A DNA stretch of 64,000 bases from Heteronotia binoei (taxonomy: Eukaryota): positions 78,430,001-78,494,000 of the forward strand of contig NC_083228.1 of the NCBI RefSeq assembly GCF_032191835.1. The letters are read 5' to 3'. Of the stretch, positions 36,169 to 52,870 are shown in pieces. Made by a program: the position numbers and the translations under genes. How positions within the stretch are numbered: position 1 is the first letter of the stretch; each line of letters begins with the position of its first letter. Below the pieces are notes generated by a model that worked only from the letters and a program-made list of their open reading frames with translations, was not told where the DNA came from and did no database searches.

Positions 36169-36324
<156 letters not shown>

Positions 36325-36689: not shown

Positions 36690-36869
<180 letters not shown>

Positions 36870-37820: not shown

Positions 37821-38000
<180 letters not shown>

Positions 38001-39460: not shown

Positions 39461-39978
39461 TAGGCTTCCCAATCCCCAGGTCCCAGAGGGGGATCCCCCG
39501 GTTTTACAGGCTTCCCCCCTCCCCCAGCCAGCTGGCCGGCGGGGGAAGCCCCACCCCCACAGCCATCATGCACCTCCATGAACAATTCCCATAGGGAATG
39601 ATGGGGAATTGATCCGCGGGTATCAGGGGCTCTGGGGGGGCTGTTTTTTGAGATAGAGGCACCAAATTTTCCGTATAGCATCTAGTGCCTCTCCCCAAAA
39701 TACCTCCCAAGTTTCAAAAAGATTGGACCAGGGGGTCCAATTCTATGAGCCCCAAAAGAAGGTGCCCCTAAACTTCATTATTTCCTATGGAAGGAAGGCA
39801 TTTAAAAAGATGTGCAGTCCCTTTAAATGTGATGGCCAGAACTTCCTTGAAGTTCAATTATGCTTGTCACACCCTTGCTCTTGGCTCCACCCCAATGTCT
39901 CCTGGCTCCACCCCCAAAGTCTCCTGGCTCCACCCCCAAAGTCCCCAGATATTTCTTGAATTGGATTTGGCAACCCTA
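39461..39978. mobile_element. hAT (Tip100-like TAGGGT ends) non-autonomous element, 518 bp
   Basis: TAGGCTTCCCAA / TTGGCAACCCTA ends; perfect TSD ATACCCAC at 39453-39460 and 39979-39986; ~21-bp unit x3 near 39880-39945. Confidence 0.88.
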
Positions 39979-42900
39979 ATACCCACCAACAGAGATCATG
40001 GCATTTGCTGCAGGATAGTTCTTGATGATAGATGTTGGGCATGCTCACTACCCTGCATTACACTCACCTGATATGAACAGGCCAGAAATTCCTGTGGCTT
40101 TTTAAAGATAGGAATCATTGTGCCAGGCCAGGTGAGTACCGTTAGAAGGAAAAGTACATACTGAGTCTTTACTCCTCCCTGTCTAGGGGAACAGGTAATA
40201 ACACATTTGTCAGTGGACTGGCAGTTCATACAGTAAGCATGATATGGTGGGGTAAAGCAGTGGTTTCCGAGCCTATGGGAAGGGTGCCAAGAAAATGGAT
40301 GTATGATTTTCCATCTCCTCTTTCAACATGGTTTATGTCTACTTACAGATGCAGAGGCAGAATTCTCCTTAGTGGCAACACTCAGTACAACAAACACACC
40401 AAGATGTTCATTCATGTAGTAGCCAAGTGCTACATTTATGTAGCTGAAAAACAGGTTCTTGATAACGTAATTCATGGGCCAAACATGAATAACAAGGGCA
40501 AATAAAATGGAGTTCTTGGCAGAGTTTTCCTAACTTTCAAAGTAGCTTGCTCTAGATGTTTGACGAAGTCTGAGAATTGATCTAATTTGCAAGCTGTTAA
40601 ATAATAGAATATCTGGAAAATACTACATGATCAGCAAAAAAGGCCGGTTTTTAGCCACATCAGTAGCTTACATACTCTTCTCTGTTAATCAACTATTTGT
40701 TATCACTTTCAATAGATAAAGTGAGTAAATTCTTGTTCTTACACAGAATACCTGAAGGATCTTCTTTAGGGCGGGGGGGGGGGGAGTCTATACCAGGGGC
40801 AGGAGTCTTAACATTTTGGTTTGCATTTGTGAGAAATGGACAGATTTCAGTATGGGAAAACATTCCCAGCAAAGTTCTGAAAGGCCAAACTTATAGCTGA
40901 TTAGTGCTGTACTTTGAGGCTTTGAGGGGTCTCCGGGAAGAGTTGCATTTTCATCATCTGCAGAAGTTTTCAGAGTCATTTATTTGACATAAGCTCAACA
41001 GAATCCTAACCTTCTTGGACATTGCTAAACATCTAAAGCTACGCAAGACCGGTGGAACCTTGGATAATTGGAAGAGAAGGTACAGATTACTATCTTTCAC
41101 TTCGGGACTATTTACAATTTAATGGAGTAAATTTAAAAGGTGGGAAATGAAAATCTATAAAGCTTGGAAGAAGAAGGGAAAAAGAGGTGAAATTTGGACT
41201 TTGTAAATATAAAGGACAGTGCTAAAAAGTGGAAAGGAATTTATTGTTTGGTCTATTTGCGGTTTTGAAAAAAGAGCACCATAGTCACAGACCTGCAGCA
41301 TATTTAAGCAGAACAGAAAGTATGTCAAGTATCATGAGATCTCCTGACTAGTGTGAATGAGACTTTGTGGCAAGTAAACCAGGAAGTAGTGAATGGAAAA
41401 CCTACTCTAGGAATATAACACCATTGAGAAATAGCGGCGGCCATTGCTTGGAGGTCAAAATTAAAATAAGGTTTTTAAAGTGTTCGGGACATTAAAAACT
41501 GTTGGAATTAACTGTTGGAATTAAGAGGACAAGAAGATAAGTATTATTGGACATATTATGTGTGTGGACTTTAGAAGTTTTTAAAAGGGAAAAAAAATTG
41601 TAAGGAGCAGCAAAAAGTCGCGACTGCCATTTTGAAACATTTAAAGACTTTAAAAATAAATATCTTGATTTTGGGAGCTTGGAGGATGGCAAAATTAGGC
41701 TTATTATAAAAGGCAAGTCCTATTCTTTTGAATCTGATAGTTGAATTTGAATTTGGTGAGGTCTAAATTTTCGCTGTTTTTTAAATGTCAGAACACAAGC
41801 AACCCCGTACAAGGGCTACTTCATTAGAAAAAATGCAGGACTAATTAGAAGCAATAGAGGCCAGAATGATGAGAGGTATGAGAGAGATGATAACTGAATC
41901 GAAAAAAGAAATTATTGAAGAGATTAAAAAAAGATATGGAGGATCTCAGAAAGGAAACTGAGGAAACATCTAAGAAAGTGCAGGAAGTAGAAGGCAGAAT
42001 GAAAGTATATGATTCCACCTTGTTGAAAATGCAAGAAAAAGTGACAATCCATGACTGCAAACTGATGGAGACTCAGATACGTCTGAGAGGAGTACCCGAA
42101 AAGGAAGATGGTGATCTAAAAGAATATATAATAAAAATAATTGCAGAATTTTTAGAGGAAGATCCTGAAGAGACTAAACATGTATGACTATATGTATAGA
42201 GTGAACTCACTTTATGCCAAGAAAAATAACTTACCAAGAGATGTTGTCATAAGATTTATGACAAAGGAAATGGTGGGAAGGATCATGAATAAAAACTTTG
42301 AAAAGACACTGATAGTGGGAGGCAGCAGAGTAAGAATTATGAAGGAGTTGCCAAGGCAAGTGATAAATGATAGAAGAACATATAAAAAATTGACAGAAAA
42401 ATTAAGAGATAGTGGAATAAGATTTATATGGATAATACCTGAAGGTCTGAGCTTCGAACTTCAGGGGAAAAGAATCACAATTACAAATGTACAGGAAATG
42501 CGTAGATGTTATGAAGAAAATAAAGAATTTGCATCATGATGGATTGCAAATTATTGTCTTGGAATGTAAATGGACTAAATTCACCACAAAAAAGAAGGGC
42601 AACATTTCATTGGATTAAGAAATAAAACTGTAATATAATTTGTTTACAAGAAGTGCATATTAAACAAAAGGATTACAAATTTTTATGGAATAAACAATTG
42701 GGACTAGAATTTTTTTCATTGGCTGAACAGACAAAAAGGGGAGTGATTTTTTGTATTAAACAAGAATTGGAGCCAAAATTAGTGTTTAAAGATAAAGATG
42801 GGAGATTTGTAGCAGGAGAAACAATATTAAATGGAAAGAAAACGTTGCTATTGGGACTGTATGCGCCTAATGATGCAAAGGATGCTTTTTAAAAAGACAT

Positions 42901-43089
42901 TATACAACAGCTTGATGAAATGACCTATGATCAAGTTTTGATAATGGGAGATTTTAATGGAACAGTTAAGAACTCATTGGACAGGTCTGGAGGGGGAAAA
43001 AAAAGCAGTAAAGAAGGAAAACTGCCAAAGTCTTTTTTTGAATTGGTTAAATAAGAAAATCTAGAAGATATATGGAGGAAATTTAACTC

Positions 43090-43908
43090 TAGGGTGGCCA
43101 GACCGTCCCGGGAGCCCGGGAATGTCCCGGTTCTGGCCCCCTATTCCCGCCTCCCAGGCTGGCTATACCGGGACCATTTAGAGGTCCCGGTTTAGCCAGC
43201 CCCGGAGGCGGTGGGCCGCGGGCGCCGGCGGGGAAGGCGGCGAGTGAGGGAGGGAGCGTCCCTGCGCCTGCACCGCCTTCCCCGCCCGCGCGCGGGGCCC
43301 GGCGGCGGTGGTGGAGGCCTCTCCGTGGCCTCCGCTGGTCGCTGGAAGCCCTCCAGAGACTCTGGAGGGCCTCCAGCGACCAGCGGAGGCCGTGGAGCAC
43401 CCGGCGCTGGTCCTGGAAGGCCTTCCAGAACCTCTGGAAGGCCTTCCGGGACCAGCGCCGACCAGCGAAGGCCTCCCCGCGGCCTCCGCTGGTCCCTGGA
43501 GGCCCTCCAGAGTCTCTGGAGGGCCTCCAGGGACCAGCGGAGGCCGCAGGGAAGCCGCGGAGCACCCGGCGCTGGTCCCGGAAGGCCTTCCAGAGCCTCT
43601 GAAAGGCCTTCCGGGACCAGCGCCGACCAGCGAAGGCCTCCCCGCGGCCTCCGCTGGTCCCTGGAGGCCCTCCAGAGTCTCTGGAGGGCTTCCAGGGACC
43701 AGCGGAGGCCGCGGGGAAGCCGCGGAGCACCTGGCGCTGGTCCCGGAAGGCCTTCCAGAGCCTCTGGAAGGCCTTCCGGGACCAGCGCCGACCAGCGAAG
43801 GCCTCCCCGCGGCCTCCGCTGGTCCTCTGGAAGGCCTTCCGGGACCAGTGCCGACCAGCGACCCCCCAACGTGTCCCTGGCTGGCCTTCAGACATTATGG
43901 TCACCCTA
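43090..43908. mobile_element. hAT non-autonomous element with internal palindrome array, inserted in L1 endonuclease
   Basis: TIRs TAGGGTGGCCAGACCGTC vs TAGGGTGACCATAATGTC (14/18); perfect TSD TTTAACTC 43082-43089 and 43909-43916; removal restores L1 EDIWRKFNSEVRDYTFFS. Confidence 0.95.
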
Positions 43909-45490
43909 TTTAACTCTGAAGTTCGGGACTATACTTTTTTTTCAGCAAGACATAAAACTTTTTCTAGAATTGACATGTTGTGGGGAACTAAAGAATTAGG
44001 TCTTATAACAAGGAAAAAAAAGATTTTACCTAAGATTGGGGCTGACCATAACCCAATAATGTGGATTACAAAATTGTCCAAGAAGTTGAAAAGATGGAGA
44101 TTGAATGAAGATTTGCTACAGAATAAAGAAACAGTGACATACCTAGAAAATGAAACTAAAGCCTTTTTCCAAATGAATGACAAAGAGGACATAGATTTCC
44201 AGACAGTCTGGGATGCTTATAAAGCAGTAATGAGAGGAATGTTAATTACTTTGAATAATAAGGGTAAAAGAGAAACAGAGAAACAGATGTTGGACATTCA
44301 AAATGATATAAAGAAAAAAGGGGAGTTGAGAAAAAGGCCAAGGAAAAAGAAAATTATAAGGGAAATTACAATATTACAAACTCAAATGAGACATTTGTTA
44401 ACTAAAGAAGTGGAATAGAGTTTGCAAAGATTGCAGCAGAAAACCTTTGAGGGAGCAAATAAACCGGGAAATTATTTGGCTTGGCAACTGAAAAAAAATA
44501 GGGAAAGTAAAATTATTAATGCAGTTGTGGTAGATGGAAGAGAAGTGGTTACCCAAGAGGGAATAAAAAGAGTATTTTTAAGTATTATGCCAAATTATTT
44601 AAAGGTGTTAAAATAAAGAAGGAGAAGATAGATGAATATTTACAAAAGGTAAAAATAGGGACCTTAACTGAAAATATGCAATAAGTTTTGAATGATCCAA
44701 TTGAAAAAATAGAAATTGAAGCAGCAATCAACGCAATGAAAAATGGAAAAGCACCTGGGCCAGATGGATATATAACTAAATTTTTTTAAATCTTCAAAGA
44801 GGAATTAATACCAAAGTTGCAGAAGTTGATGAATACGATAAAAATGAAAAGGAAAATCCCAAACACATGGAAGGAAGCTGTTATTTCGTTGATACCTAAG
44901 GAAGATAGAGATGTCACGAATGTAAAAAATTAGAGACCAATTTCGCTATTAAATAATTACTATAAAATTTATACAAGAATCCTGGCAGAATGGCTTAAAC
45001 AGCATTTGATAAATTTTATAAAGAAAGATCAAGCGGGTTTTCTTCCCAAAAGGCAAATAAAAGACAATATTAGAACTGTTGTAAATATTGTAGAATATCA
45101 TGAAAGACATCCAGAAAAAGAAGTAGCATTATTCTTTGCAGATGCAGAGAAAGCATTTGACAATTTAAACTGGGACTTTATGTTTGCAGTAATGGAAAAA
45201 ATGGAGCTTGGAGAAAGCTTTATAAGAATGATAAAAGCAATATATTCTGAACAAAGCGCAAGATTATGTATAAATGCAGATCTTACAGAAGATATGAAAA
45301 TCAGCAAAGGTACTAGACAAGGTTGTCCACTTTCACCATTGTTGTTTATAATGACTCTTGAAATAGTATTGATGCAGATACAAGAAGAAAAAGACATAGA
45401 AGGATTAAGAATAAAAGGATTTACTTACAAATACAGAGCTTTTGCTGATGATATAATGTTTATAAATGAAAACCCCATACACAAGTTACA

Positions 45491-45649
45491 TGTTTTGGTT
45501 AAATGTTTTAATTAATTATTGATTGGTTTTAATGTGATTTTAATGTCTTATTATTGTATTGTTCACTTTTAAATGTTGTTAGCCGCCCTGAGCCTGCTTC
45601 GGCGGGGGAGGGCGGGATACAAATAAAATTTTACTTACTTACTTACTTA
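45491..45649 (+). mobile_element. L2-type 3' end inserted in L1 RT domain
   Basis: GTTAGCCGCCCTGAGCCTGCTTCGGCGGG..AGGGCGGGATACAAAT + (TTAC)n tail; L1 frame NENPI..PLLLVKIQEYG resumes after it. Confidence 0.75.
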
Positions 45650-47474
45650 TCTTTGTTGTTAGTTAAAATACAAGAATATGGGGAGTTGGCGGGACTTTGT
45701 ATTAATAGAGAAAAATAAAAAATTCTGTGTAAAAATATGCAGATAAATAAACAACAAGAATTGCAGAAACTAACGGGCTGCGAAGTCACCTCCAAGGTAA
45801 AATATCTGGGGGTGGAGATAACAATGAAGAATACTGATCTGTTCAAAAATAATTATGAGAAGTTATGGTGTAAAATGGATGAATACATGTTAAAACGGAA
45901 CAAGCTTAATTTGTCATTGTTGGGTAGAATAGCTGCAATAAAAATGAATATTCTACCAAGAATAATGTATTTGTTTCAAACTATTCCTATTGTGAAGGAC
46001 AGTAAACAATTTGATAAATGGCGAAGAAAAAATTCAGAATTTGTGTGGGCCGGGAAGAAACCAAAGATTAAAATGAAAATTTTGACAGATGCAAAAGAGA
46101 GAGGTGGATTTCAACTACCAAATTTAAGATTATATCAGGAAGCAGTTTGCTTAGTGTGGATAAAAGAATGGATAACGCTGTTAAACAGAAAACTTTTAGT
46201 GCTGGAAGGTCACAGAAATAAATTTGGCTGGCAAGCATATTTGTATTATGGAAAAAAGAAGATGGATGGTTTTTTCTCTCACCATTACATAAGAAATAAT
46301 TTGTTAAGTACATGGATGAAATATAAGAAGTATGGAGATGAGAGAAGACCATTATGGATAGTACCGGCGGAAGTAATCAAAATAACAGCTGAGATAGGGG
46401 AAGAAAAGTGGTTGTCATATAGTCAACTGTTAAAAATACAAAGTGGCAAAAACCCCCTGAAAACTGCTGAAGAGTTGAATAATAAATATGATTGGTTTCA
46501 AAGGCAACAAATAAAGAGCTTGGTGGAGAATGATATTAAAACTGAAGGAATAAGGAAATAATGGGAAAAGTTCTGCTTGGAGACAATGATAAATTAATTT
46601 CAAAAGTATATAAATTACTTTTACAATGGTCTACAGAAGATGAAGTAGTAAAATCTCAAATGATTAAATGGGCAATTAATGTAAATAAAGAAATACAGAT
46701 GGAAACTTGGGAATATTTGTGGAAGAACTCTATGAAACTCTCAACATGCCAGAATATCAAAGAAAATTGTTTTAAGATGATGTACAGATGGTATATAACT
46801 CCTAAAAAATTGGCAAAGATGAATAATAAGATGCCAGACAGATGTTGGAAATGTAAAAAGCATGAAGGTTCTTTCTACCATATGTGGTGGACTTGTGAAA
46901 GAGCTAAAATGTTTTGGCAGATGATTTAGCAAGAGATTTCTAAGATCTTGGGATACGAATTTAACAAAGTTGAAGACTTTTCTGTTAGGATTACAAATGG
47001 AAAAATTTCCAAAAGAAGATAGAACTTTAATCTGGTACTTGCTTTCAGCTGCTGGGACATTGTATGCGCAGTTGCGGAAGCAAGAAAAAATACCAGAGAA
47101 ATGGGATTGGATTGTTAAAGTTATGACATGGAGTGAAATGGGTAAGTTAATAAGAACTTTAAGAGACTATGATTTAGAAGTATTTAAGATGGAGTGGAAG
47201 AAGTTCAGAAGATACGTAGAAAAAGAATGGAAAATAAAAGGACATTGGACAATCTTTGATAATGATTAAGTATAAGTGGGGGGGAGATATGAACTTTGGT
47301 TCTTATTAATTAGGGGTACCTTTTAAAATGATGTTTTGAATTTAGTACACCGGCGTGGGTCAAGTAAGGGGGGAGGGGTAGGTAGAAAGTAATATATGGG
47401 ATTTAAAAAGTAGTTATTAATTATATAAGAAATTGAATATATTGCCATATGTTACTAATAAAAGATTGTTTGAA

Positions 47475-48564: not shown

Positions 48565-48761
48565 TTTCTACTTGTGCTCACTGCTCAGTATTAAGACCAT
48601 ACACAAAGTCCTTGTGGGGTGCAGTGATGTTTCTACTTGTGCTCACTGCTCAGTATTAAGACCATACACAAAGTCCTTGTGGGGTGCAGTGATGTTTCTA
48701 CTTGTGCTCACTGCTCAGTATTAAGACCATACACAAAGTCCTTGTGGGGTGCAGTGATGTT
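48565..48761. repeat. 65-bp minisatellite, three identical copies
   Basis: Unit TTTCTACTTGTGCTCACTGC...GGGGTGCAGTGATG at 48565, 48630, 48695. Confidence 0.95.
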
Positions 48762-52468: not shown

Positions 52469-52680
52469 TAGGGTTGCCAAACCTCCAGGTAATAGCTAAA
52501 GATCTCCCACTATTTCAGCTGATTTCCAGGAGATTATATTTTACCTGGAGAAAATGGCTGCTTTGGAAAGTGGACTGTAAGGTATTATACCCCACTGAGG
52601 TCCCTTCCCTCTCCAAATCTCGCTCTCCTCAAGCTCTACCCCAAAACCTGCATATATTGCCCAACCTGGAAGTGGCAATA
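52469..52680. mobile_element. TAGGGTTGCC-end hAT MITE, degraded
   Basis: TAGGGTTGCCAAACCTCCAGG start; same family as 63073-63833. Confidence 0.7.
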
Positions 52681-52689
52681 TATTTTATG

Positions 52690-52870
52690 TTATTAGGGTT
52701 TGTAGAATCTTTCAGGATCAAGTGCCGTGTTCTACTGGAGAAAGTTTTCCTTCCAGACGTTTCGTTCTCAGCTGCGGAGAACATCCTCAGTTGCAGTGCA
52801 GCTGCAACGCCACTTGATCCCGAAAGATTCTACAAACCCTAATGATGTTACCAGCCGTGAAAACCTGAAA
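52690..52870. mobile_element. Penelope-like inverted pseudo-LTR element
   Basis: 32-bp inverted repeat 52693-52724/52811-52842 (1 mismatch) enclosing a hammerhead motif. Confidence 0.75.
52753..52793 (-). ncRNA. Minimal type I hammerhead ribozyme motif (Penelope type)
   Basis: Minus strand CAA-CUGAGGA-U-GUUCUC(cgcagcu)GAGAAC-GAAA-CGUC-UGG: intact core, 6-bp stem II, palindromic ACGU stem III, GUC cleavage triplet; stem I has one mismatch. Confidence 0.7.

Follow-up and report, generated by a model that had tools for sequence, protein, structure and literature searches.

The stretch of DNA analysed here (64,000 nucleotides of the gecko Heteronotia binoei, hereafter the window) contains, at 43090-43908, a row of long palindromes within what looks like a DNA transposon. 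This locus raises the question of how such a row comes into being, and of whether its hairpins are kept by selection or were generated by mutation. We approached the question through the element that carries the palindromes, the order of the palindromes themselves and the substitutions that distinguish their copies.

The element is 819 bp long, with a G+C content of 72.5% and 74 CpGs. It is enclosed by a target-site duplication, TTTAACTC, the left copy of which (43082-43089) recurs perfectly at 43909-43916 (8/8 identical). The terminal inverted repeats are TAGGGTGGCCA at 43090-43100 on the plus strand and TAGGGTGACCA on the minus strand at 43898-43908; 10 of their 11 bases pair. The element begins with TAG and ends with CTA, and TAGGGTG is found at both ends. 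It is known that hAT transposons have short terminal inverted repeats starting with YAG (CAGGG/TAGGG in Ac). The TAG...CTA ends, together with the 8-bp duplication in a symmetric solution, constitute the hAT signature. Compared with the loose hAT target-site consensus nTnnnnAn, which is statistical and needs many copies, the duplicated 8-mer fits at position 2 (T) but has T instead of A at position 7. The exact 22-mer of the left end occurs once in the window, where only one copy of the element was found. Neither a paralogous empty site nor an autonomous hAT partner, which would share these ends and carry a BED finger and a hAT dimerisation domain, was seen in the window.

Four long ORFs extend across the element. 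Since none of the four passes a Pfam cut-off, a coding element was rejected; a word-based protein search with the 271-aa ORF of the element returned no relatives. These ORFs are by-products of the G+C-rich repeats, and the element is non-coding. Its assignment as a non-autonomous hAT-type transposon copy is well supported. The preliminary description had called it a hAT MITE. MITEs are small (usually under about 800 bp), non-coding and present in high copy number. The hAT part of that name stands, since the ends are inverted, the duplication has 8 bp and no protein family was recognised, but as a MITE the element is borderline in size, 819 bp being at the upper edge. The retention of CpGs, said to set the element apart from its host L1, was borne out: the observed/expected ratio of the element is 0.69, that of the flanking LINE sequence 0.33 and that of the window 0.24, and the whole element classifies as a CpG island.

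Other elements are also present in the window. A second hAT-type MITE of about 518 bp (39461-39978) has ends of the TAGG(G/C)TT(G/C)CCAA type, an 8-bp duplication (ATACCCAC) and an internal 22-bp tandem repeat in 3 copies (39878-39943). Further downstream, a MITE-like stretch (region 52469-52851) begins with TAGGGTTGCCAAACC at 52469; the hairpin element adjoining it (about 52694-52851) measures about 158 bp and has inverted ends of about 33 nt.

The 819-bp element interrupts an L1-like LINE (41915-47269, plus strand) that is dead, with broken ORF1 and ORF2 pieces surviving as ORF fragments. The reverse-transcriptase domain of this LINE lies at 45006-45512 (Pfam RVT_1, E = 1.6e-21). In the 5' part of the host ORF2, a GDFN motif precedes the insertion by 45 codons; we take this region to be the endonuclease, and the short ORF pieces gave no Pfam hit. 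A motif scan of six-frame translations placed MORN4-like coding exons on the minus strand: the one with the start codon spans 37839-37907, and those with MORN repeats lie near 36777-36818 and 36175-36285. Measured from the start of MORN4 coding, the element lies 5.2 kb upstream. It would lie within the MORN4 pre-mRNA, as first proposed, only if a putative 5'UTR exon exists upstream, beyond 43.9 kb.

Near the left end, the word GTCCCGG forms a subterminal cluster (43105-43190) of four words within 100 bp, at 43105, 43124 and 43184 on the plus strand and at 43168 on the minus strand; one more is found at a distance of 63 bp from the right end. For the parts outside the array, dinucleotide shuffling gave an expectation of 0.15 against the four words observed, and none of 2000 shuffles reached four. 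Short subterminal repeats are known binding sites of hAT transposases (e.g. Ac/Ds). The cluster fits such transposase-binding repeats, although binding itself is putative.

The interior of the element was then described by a gapless dyad scan, which returned exactly the six array centres previously claimed, far beyond chance: 43359, 43431, 43513, 43596, 43678 and 43761. One base is unpaired at the centre of each palindrome, again as claimed. Types B and A alternate along the row. The type-B palindromes have arms in the range of 32-43 bp given at the outset: B1 (43470-43556, centre 43513; -55.5 kcal/mol) and B2 (43635-43721, centre 43678; -57.5 kcal/mol) have 43-nt arms at 95%, and B0 (43321-43397, centre 43359; -45.6 kcal/mol), a diverged edge unit 88% identical to B1 and B2, has 38-nt arms at 92% (32 nt at 97%). 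The type-A palindromes are likewise present, but their arms measure 28-29 nt at 93-100% instead of 26. They are A1 (43402-43460, centre 43431), which was recovered by both the dyad scan and folding, A2 (43567-43625, centre 43596), whose centre doubles as the dyad centre of the entire array, and A3 (43733-43789, centre 43761), which has perfect 28-nt arms. The row ends in a truncated hybrid unit (43799-43853) with a B-type left outer arm and an A-type right arm; this unit lacks 19 columns, and its fold is not significant (z = -1.5).

A separate imperfect hairpin, centred at 43179, spans 43147-43211 (29-nt arms at 90%, 7-nt loop; -32.1 kcal/mol, z = -9.7). It had been regarded as unrelated to the units, and we agree: local alignment gave P = 0.35 against shuffles, with one common 9-mer. 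As a source of the array this hairpin was rejected, its similarity being no better than that of shuffles. The GC- and CpG-rich unique spacer that follows (43212-43314) folds no better than shuffles (z = -1.2) and has no significant similarity to the units, nor have the element ends. When folding was computed for single-stranded DNA, each of the seven hairpins reached -32 to -57.5 kcal/mol (z from -9.7 to -14.4 versus shuffles), and the whole element -408 kcal/mol (z = -39.9). No other palindrome of comparable size was found in the window.

The six palindromes are not independent of one another. Tandem Repeats Finder reported a higher-order tandem array at 43385-43840 with a 165-bp unit, the period proposed earlier, in 2.8 copies (score 831, 95% matches, no indels). 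The array thus consists of head-to-tail 165-bp copies built of diverged sub-units, that is, a minisatellite or higher-order tandem repeat. Gapless comparison of the 82-83-bp sub-units gave 63-64% identity, and their 53-nt cores are 81-87% complementary. In a seven-unit alignment, types A and B proved to be homologous over their full length (mean column identity 80%), in line with the relationship suggested for them. The array edges are the most degenerate parts, B0 on the left being 88% identical to its counterparts and the right unit being truncated; this is typical of a tandem array.

Symmetry is found within the arms as well. The nested palindrome reported for the type-A arms, GGAAGGCCTTCC (12 bp), occurs six times, always in A arms or in the truncated last unit, and the corresponding small palindrome in B arms is a 15-mer; both are repeated at 20-21-bp spacing, and Tandem Repeats Finder gave a period of 20 in two copies for the B cores. 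When the region 43364-43840 was aligned with its reverse complement, 89% of 459 aligned positions agreed (score 547 versus 30 +/- 6 for shuffles), and the asymmetry of the array is confined to a bubble of about 8-9 nt in each half-period. The small palindromes in the arms, the units and the self-complementary array therefore represent symmetry at three scales: about 12-16 bp for the first, 57-87 bp for the second and 477 bp for the third. That A and B alternate follows from the repetition of a 165-bp dimer, and the 89% self-complementarity of the 477-bp array follows from one ancestral palindrome with two paralogues (A, B), the dimer having been copied 2.8 times. The earlier view of an ordered array was therefore upheld, but that of six separate palindromes was not: a single palindrome was duplicated hierarchically. 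To judge from these alignments, the array is best described as one ancestral palindrome that gave rise to paralogues A and B and, through them, to copies of the 165-bp dimer.

Two further repeat features are recorded here. An ETS-core-like word, CCGGAAG, is present in inverted pairs within the type-A units, six in all (43443-43842). Outside the element, a 65-bp tandem repeat at 48565-48761 (3.0 copies, 100% identical) is either very young or assembly-related.

The substitutions that separate the units fall into two classes. Between A and B, the inner 30 nt of the arms differ at five positions, and in every copy each of the five is carried by both arms. The same holds for the B0-specific change that was checked, C to G. 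Among the 165-bp copies, on the other hand, eight columns are variable. All eight changes are transitions, four are at CpG, and there are no indels. None of these eight young, unit-private changes, admittedly a small sample, is mirrored on the partner arm; each lies in a single arm or in the linker. The mirrored A/B differences, set against the unmirrored young changes, indicate a symmetric older history followed by ordinary methylation-biased decay that degraded the stems. Since the young changes break stems and are uncompensated, they speak against the idea that the hairpins of this copy are being maintained at present.

The pattern of substitutions fits a mutational origin, by template switching or fold-back copying and then slippage, followed by neutral decay. 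Template switching is known to generate perfect stems, and compensatory changes of several bases, in one step during replication and with no selection involved (PMC8794818; also PMC5453318), and it would explain the mirrored older class. A hairpin kept by selection does not fit the pattern of young changes. Selection on the hairpin would equally leave symmetric A/B differences, but it does not predict the unmirrored young class.

On these grounds we consider it probable that the locus is a non-autonomous hAT copy, mobilised in trans, which carries as a passenger a palindromic minisatellite grown by repeated duplication of a palindromic seed. A transposase encoded elsewhere would move the element in trans, guided by the 11-nt ends and, probably, by the subterminal GTCCCGG words. 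In the interior, a palindrome of 12-16 bp would first have been doubled at 20-21-bp spacing. Arms of CGCTGGTC/GACCAGCG would then have framed the doubled seed, giving a palindrome of about 55-85 bp. This palindrome would have been duplicated and have diverged into types A and B, the differences being carried over to the second arm through fold-back synthesis, template-switch synthesis or correction of one arm by the other. The 165-bp A+B dimer may subsequently have reached 2.8 copies through hairpin-promoted replication slippage, unequal exchange or post-excision gap repair, and the copy would have decayed neutrally since that amplification. A slippage-type expansion, already suggested in the preliminary description, is the most economical origin. 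We infer, in addition, that the array is borne by the transposon family rather than grown locally.

It is worth considering whether the array could instead be a selected module of the transposon, in which the two inverted GTCCCGG words of each A unit serve as putative extra subterminal sites that raise mobilisation. The enrichment of GTCCCGG in the true subterminal region and the established binding of hAT transposases to such repeats are in favour of this explanation, as is the recurrence of the word at six places of the array, namely in A-type arms and the last unit, where it appears in either orientation and, within the A units, as inverted pairs. However, a given 7-mer would occur in a 165-bp GC-rich unit by chance in roughly one case in ten (a rough base-frequency estimate), and the symmetry doubles the count. 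The exact word is absent from the B-type units, and one of the words in A1 (43414) has already been destroyed by a CpG transition and was left unrepaired. The basis for a transposase-binding role of the array is this common 7-mer, which, as a sign that the array itself might be a binding platform, is weak evidence. We therefore regard a selected module as unlikely.

It is equally improbable, in our estimation, that the array or its number of units is an assembly artefact, or a private expansion after insertion, and not a feature of the family. Palindromic tandem repeats are difficult to assemble, and a single copy is all that the window offers. Against this, the units differ by private substitutions and keep a clean 165-bp register free of indels, a pattern that is not expected of mis-joined reads, and the array is enclosed by intact inverted ends and a target-site duplication.

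A somewhat more doubtful explanation is that the hairpins act as RNA. The stems (28-43 bp, perfect), transcribed through a host gene or from the CpG-rich element itself as putative sources, would then yield small RNAs, miRNA-like or endo-siRNA, or be edited. The stems are indeed long and nearly perfect on both strands, their pairing is preserved by all of the older A/B differences, and miRNA-precursor models of Rfam matched them with E-values down to 4e-9. Every Rfam hit, however, is below the gathering score (55.3 bits at best versus 74), and the hits are on both strands and scattered over many unrelated miRNA families. Such sub-threshold hits point to a generic signal of perfect hairpins. 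Moreover, the young substitutions disrupt the stems without compensation, and relative to the start-codon exon of MORN4 the element is upstream, its intronic position and its transcription being putative.

There is no more reason to adopt a combined proposal, in which a gecko hAT family possesses the palindromic dimer as a self-renewing module with a function of its own: hairpin or cruciform extrusion would drive both expansion and re-symmetrisation, transposase recruitment (through GTCCCGG) or small-RNA silencing of the family would be added, and selection acting at transposon level would tune the unit number. The uncompensated young changes are mildly against these and the other putative functional proposals, a fragile site and a dsRNA source included. 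Passenger repeat and neutral decay remain our preferred reading, and the palindrome array is probably best read as mutationally generated filler.

Taken alone, this result is modest: one more non-coding hAT copy with repeat filler, which is a known kind of repeat. Its value lies in the clean natural record that it provides of the birth and decay of a long palindrome, since at a single locus the older changes are all mirrored and the young changes are all unmirrored. With copies from the whole genome, the same pattern could be used to measure the rate at which template switching re-symmetrises hairpins in the vertebrate germ line. The element also places an 819-bp, CpG-island-like and predicted cruciform-prone block 5 kb upstream of the MORN4 coding start, and the locus may be length-polymorphic.

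The element was finally compared with known sequences and systems. The exact 22-mer of the unit had no match in metagenome or viral contigs. It had one in a Burkholderiaceae genome-bin contig (L001, 4382-4403), just upstream of a coding region; being a single occurrence in GC-rich bacterial DNA without the array, this is a chance match. A literature text search for words of the ends and the unit returned unrelated primer sequences only. The hairpins resemble miRNA precursors (Rfam mir-1258, mir-3199, mir-3158) in that both strands fold into stem-loops of 60-90 nt, but they stay below the gathering threshold and have no sequence family relationship to them. Closer in mechanism is quasipalindrome correction or template switching (PMC8794818, PMC5453318), which makes perfect inverted repeats and copies a change from arm to arm, as in the mirrored older differences. 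That process, however, is known from isolated stems in genes and genomes, not from a tandem array, and we infer its action here from the pattern.

As for the element as a whole, the nearest likeness is with the non-autonomous hAT-N and hobo-N families from the lizard Anolis carolinensis, with interiors that are unrelated to any autonomous element (PMC3014272), so that such a family is defined by its ends alone. Like them, the gecko element has short hAT-type ends, an 8-bp duplication, no transposase and a squamate host. The words palindrome, hairpin and minisatellite are absent from the text of that paper, whereas the gecko interior is an ordered palindromic higher-order repeat. A foldback transposon, in which long terminal inverted repeats account for most of the length, was also considered and was rejected, because the inversion of the ends stops after 11-13 nt and the symmetric array (43364-43840) is internal and off-centre.

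Tandem arrays borne by transposons are known from Tetris, a foldback element of Drosophila virilis with internal tandem repeats (PMC4079207), and from oyster Helentrons, which carry satellite-like arrays (PMC7492417). Both are, like the gecko element, non-autonomous DNA transposons with a short tandem array, a kind of array in which the unit number can vary and which can seed satellite DNA. The repeats of Tetris, however, lie inside long terminal inverted repeats, whereas the gecko array is internal and off-centre in an element with 11-nt ends, and the oyster arrays are carried by rolling-circle elements, not by a hAT element. In contrast to both, each unit of the gecko array is itself a near-perfect palindrome, and this property, together with the global dyad symmetry of the array, is what is particular to the gecko element.
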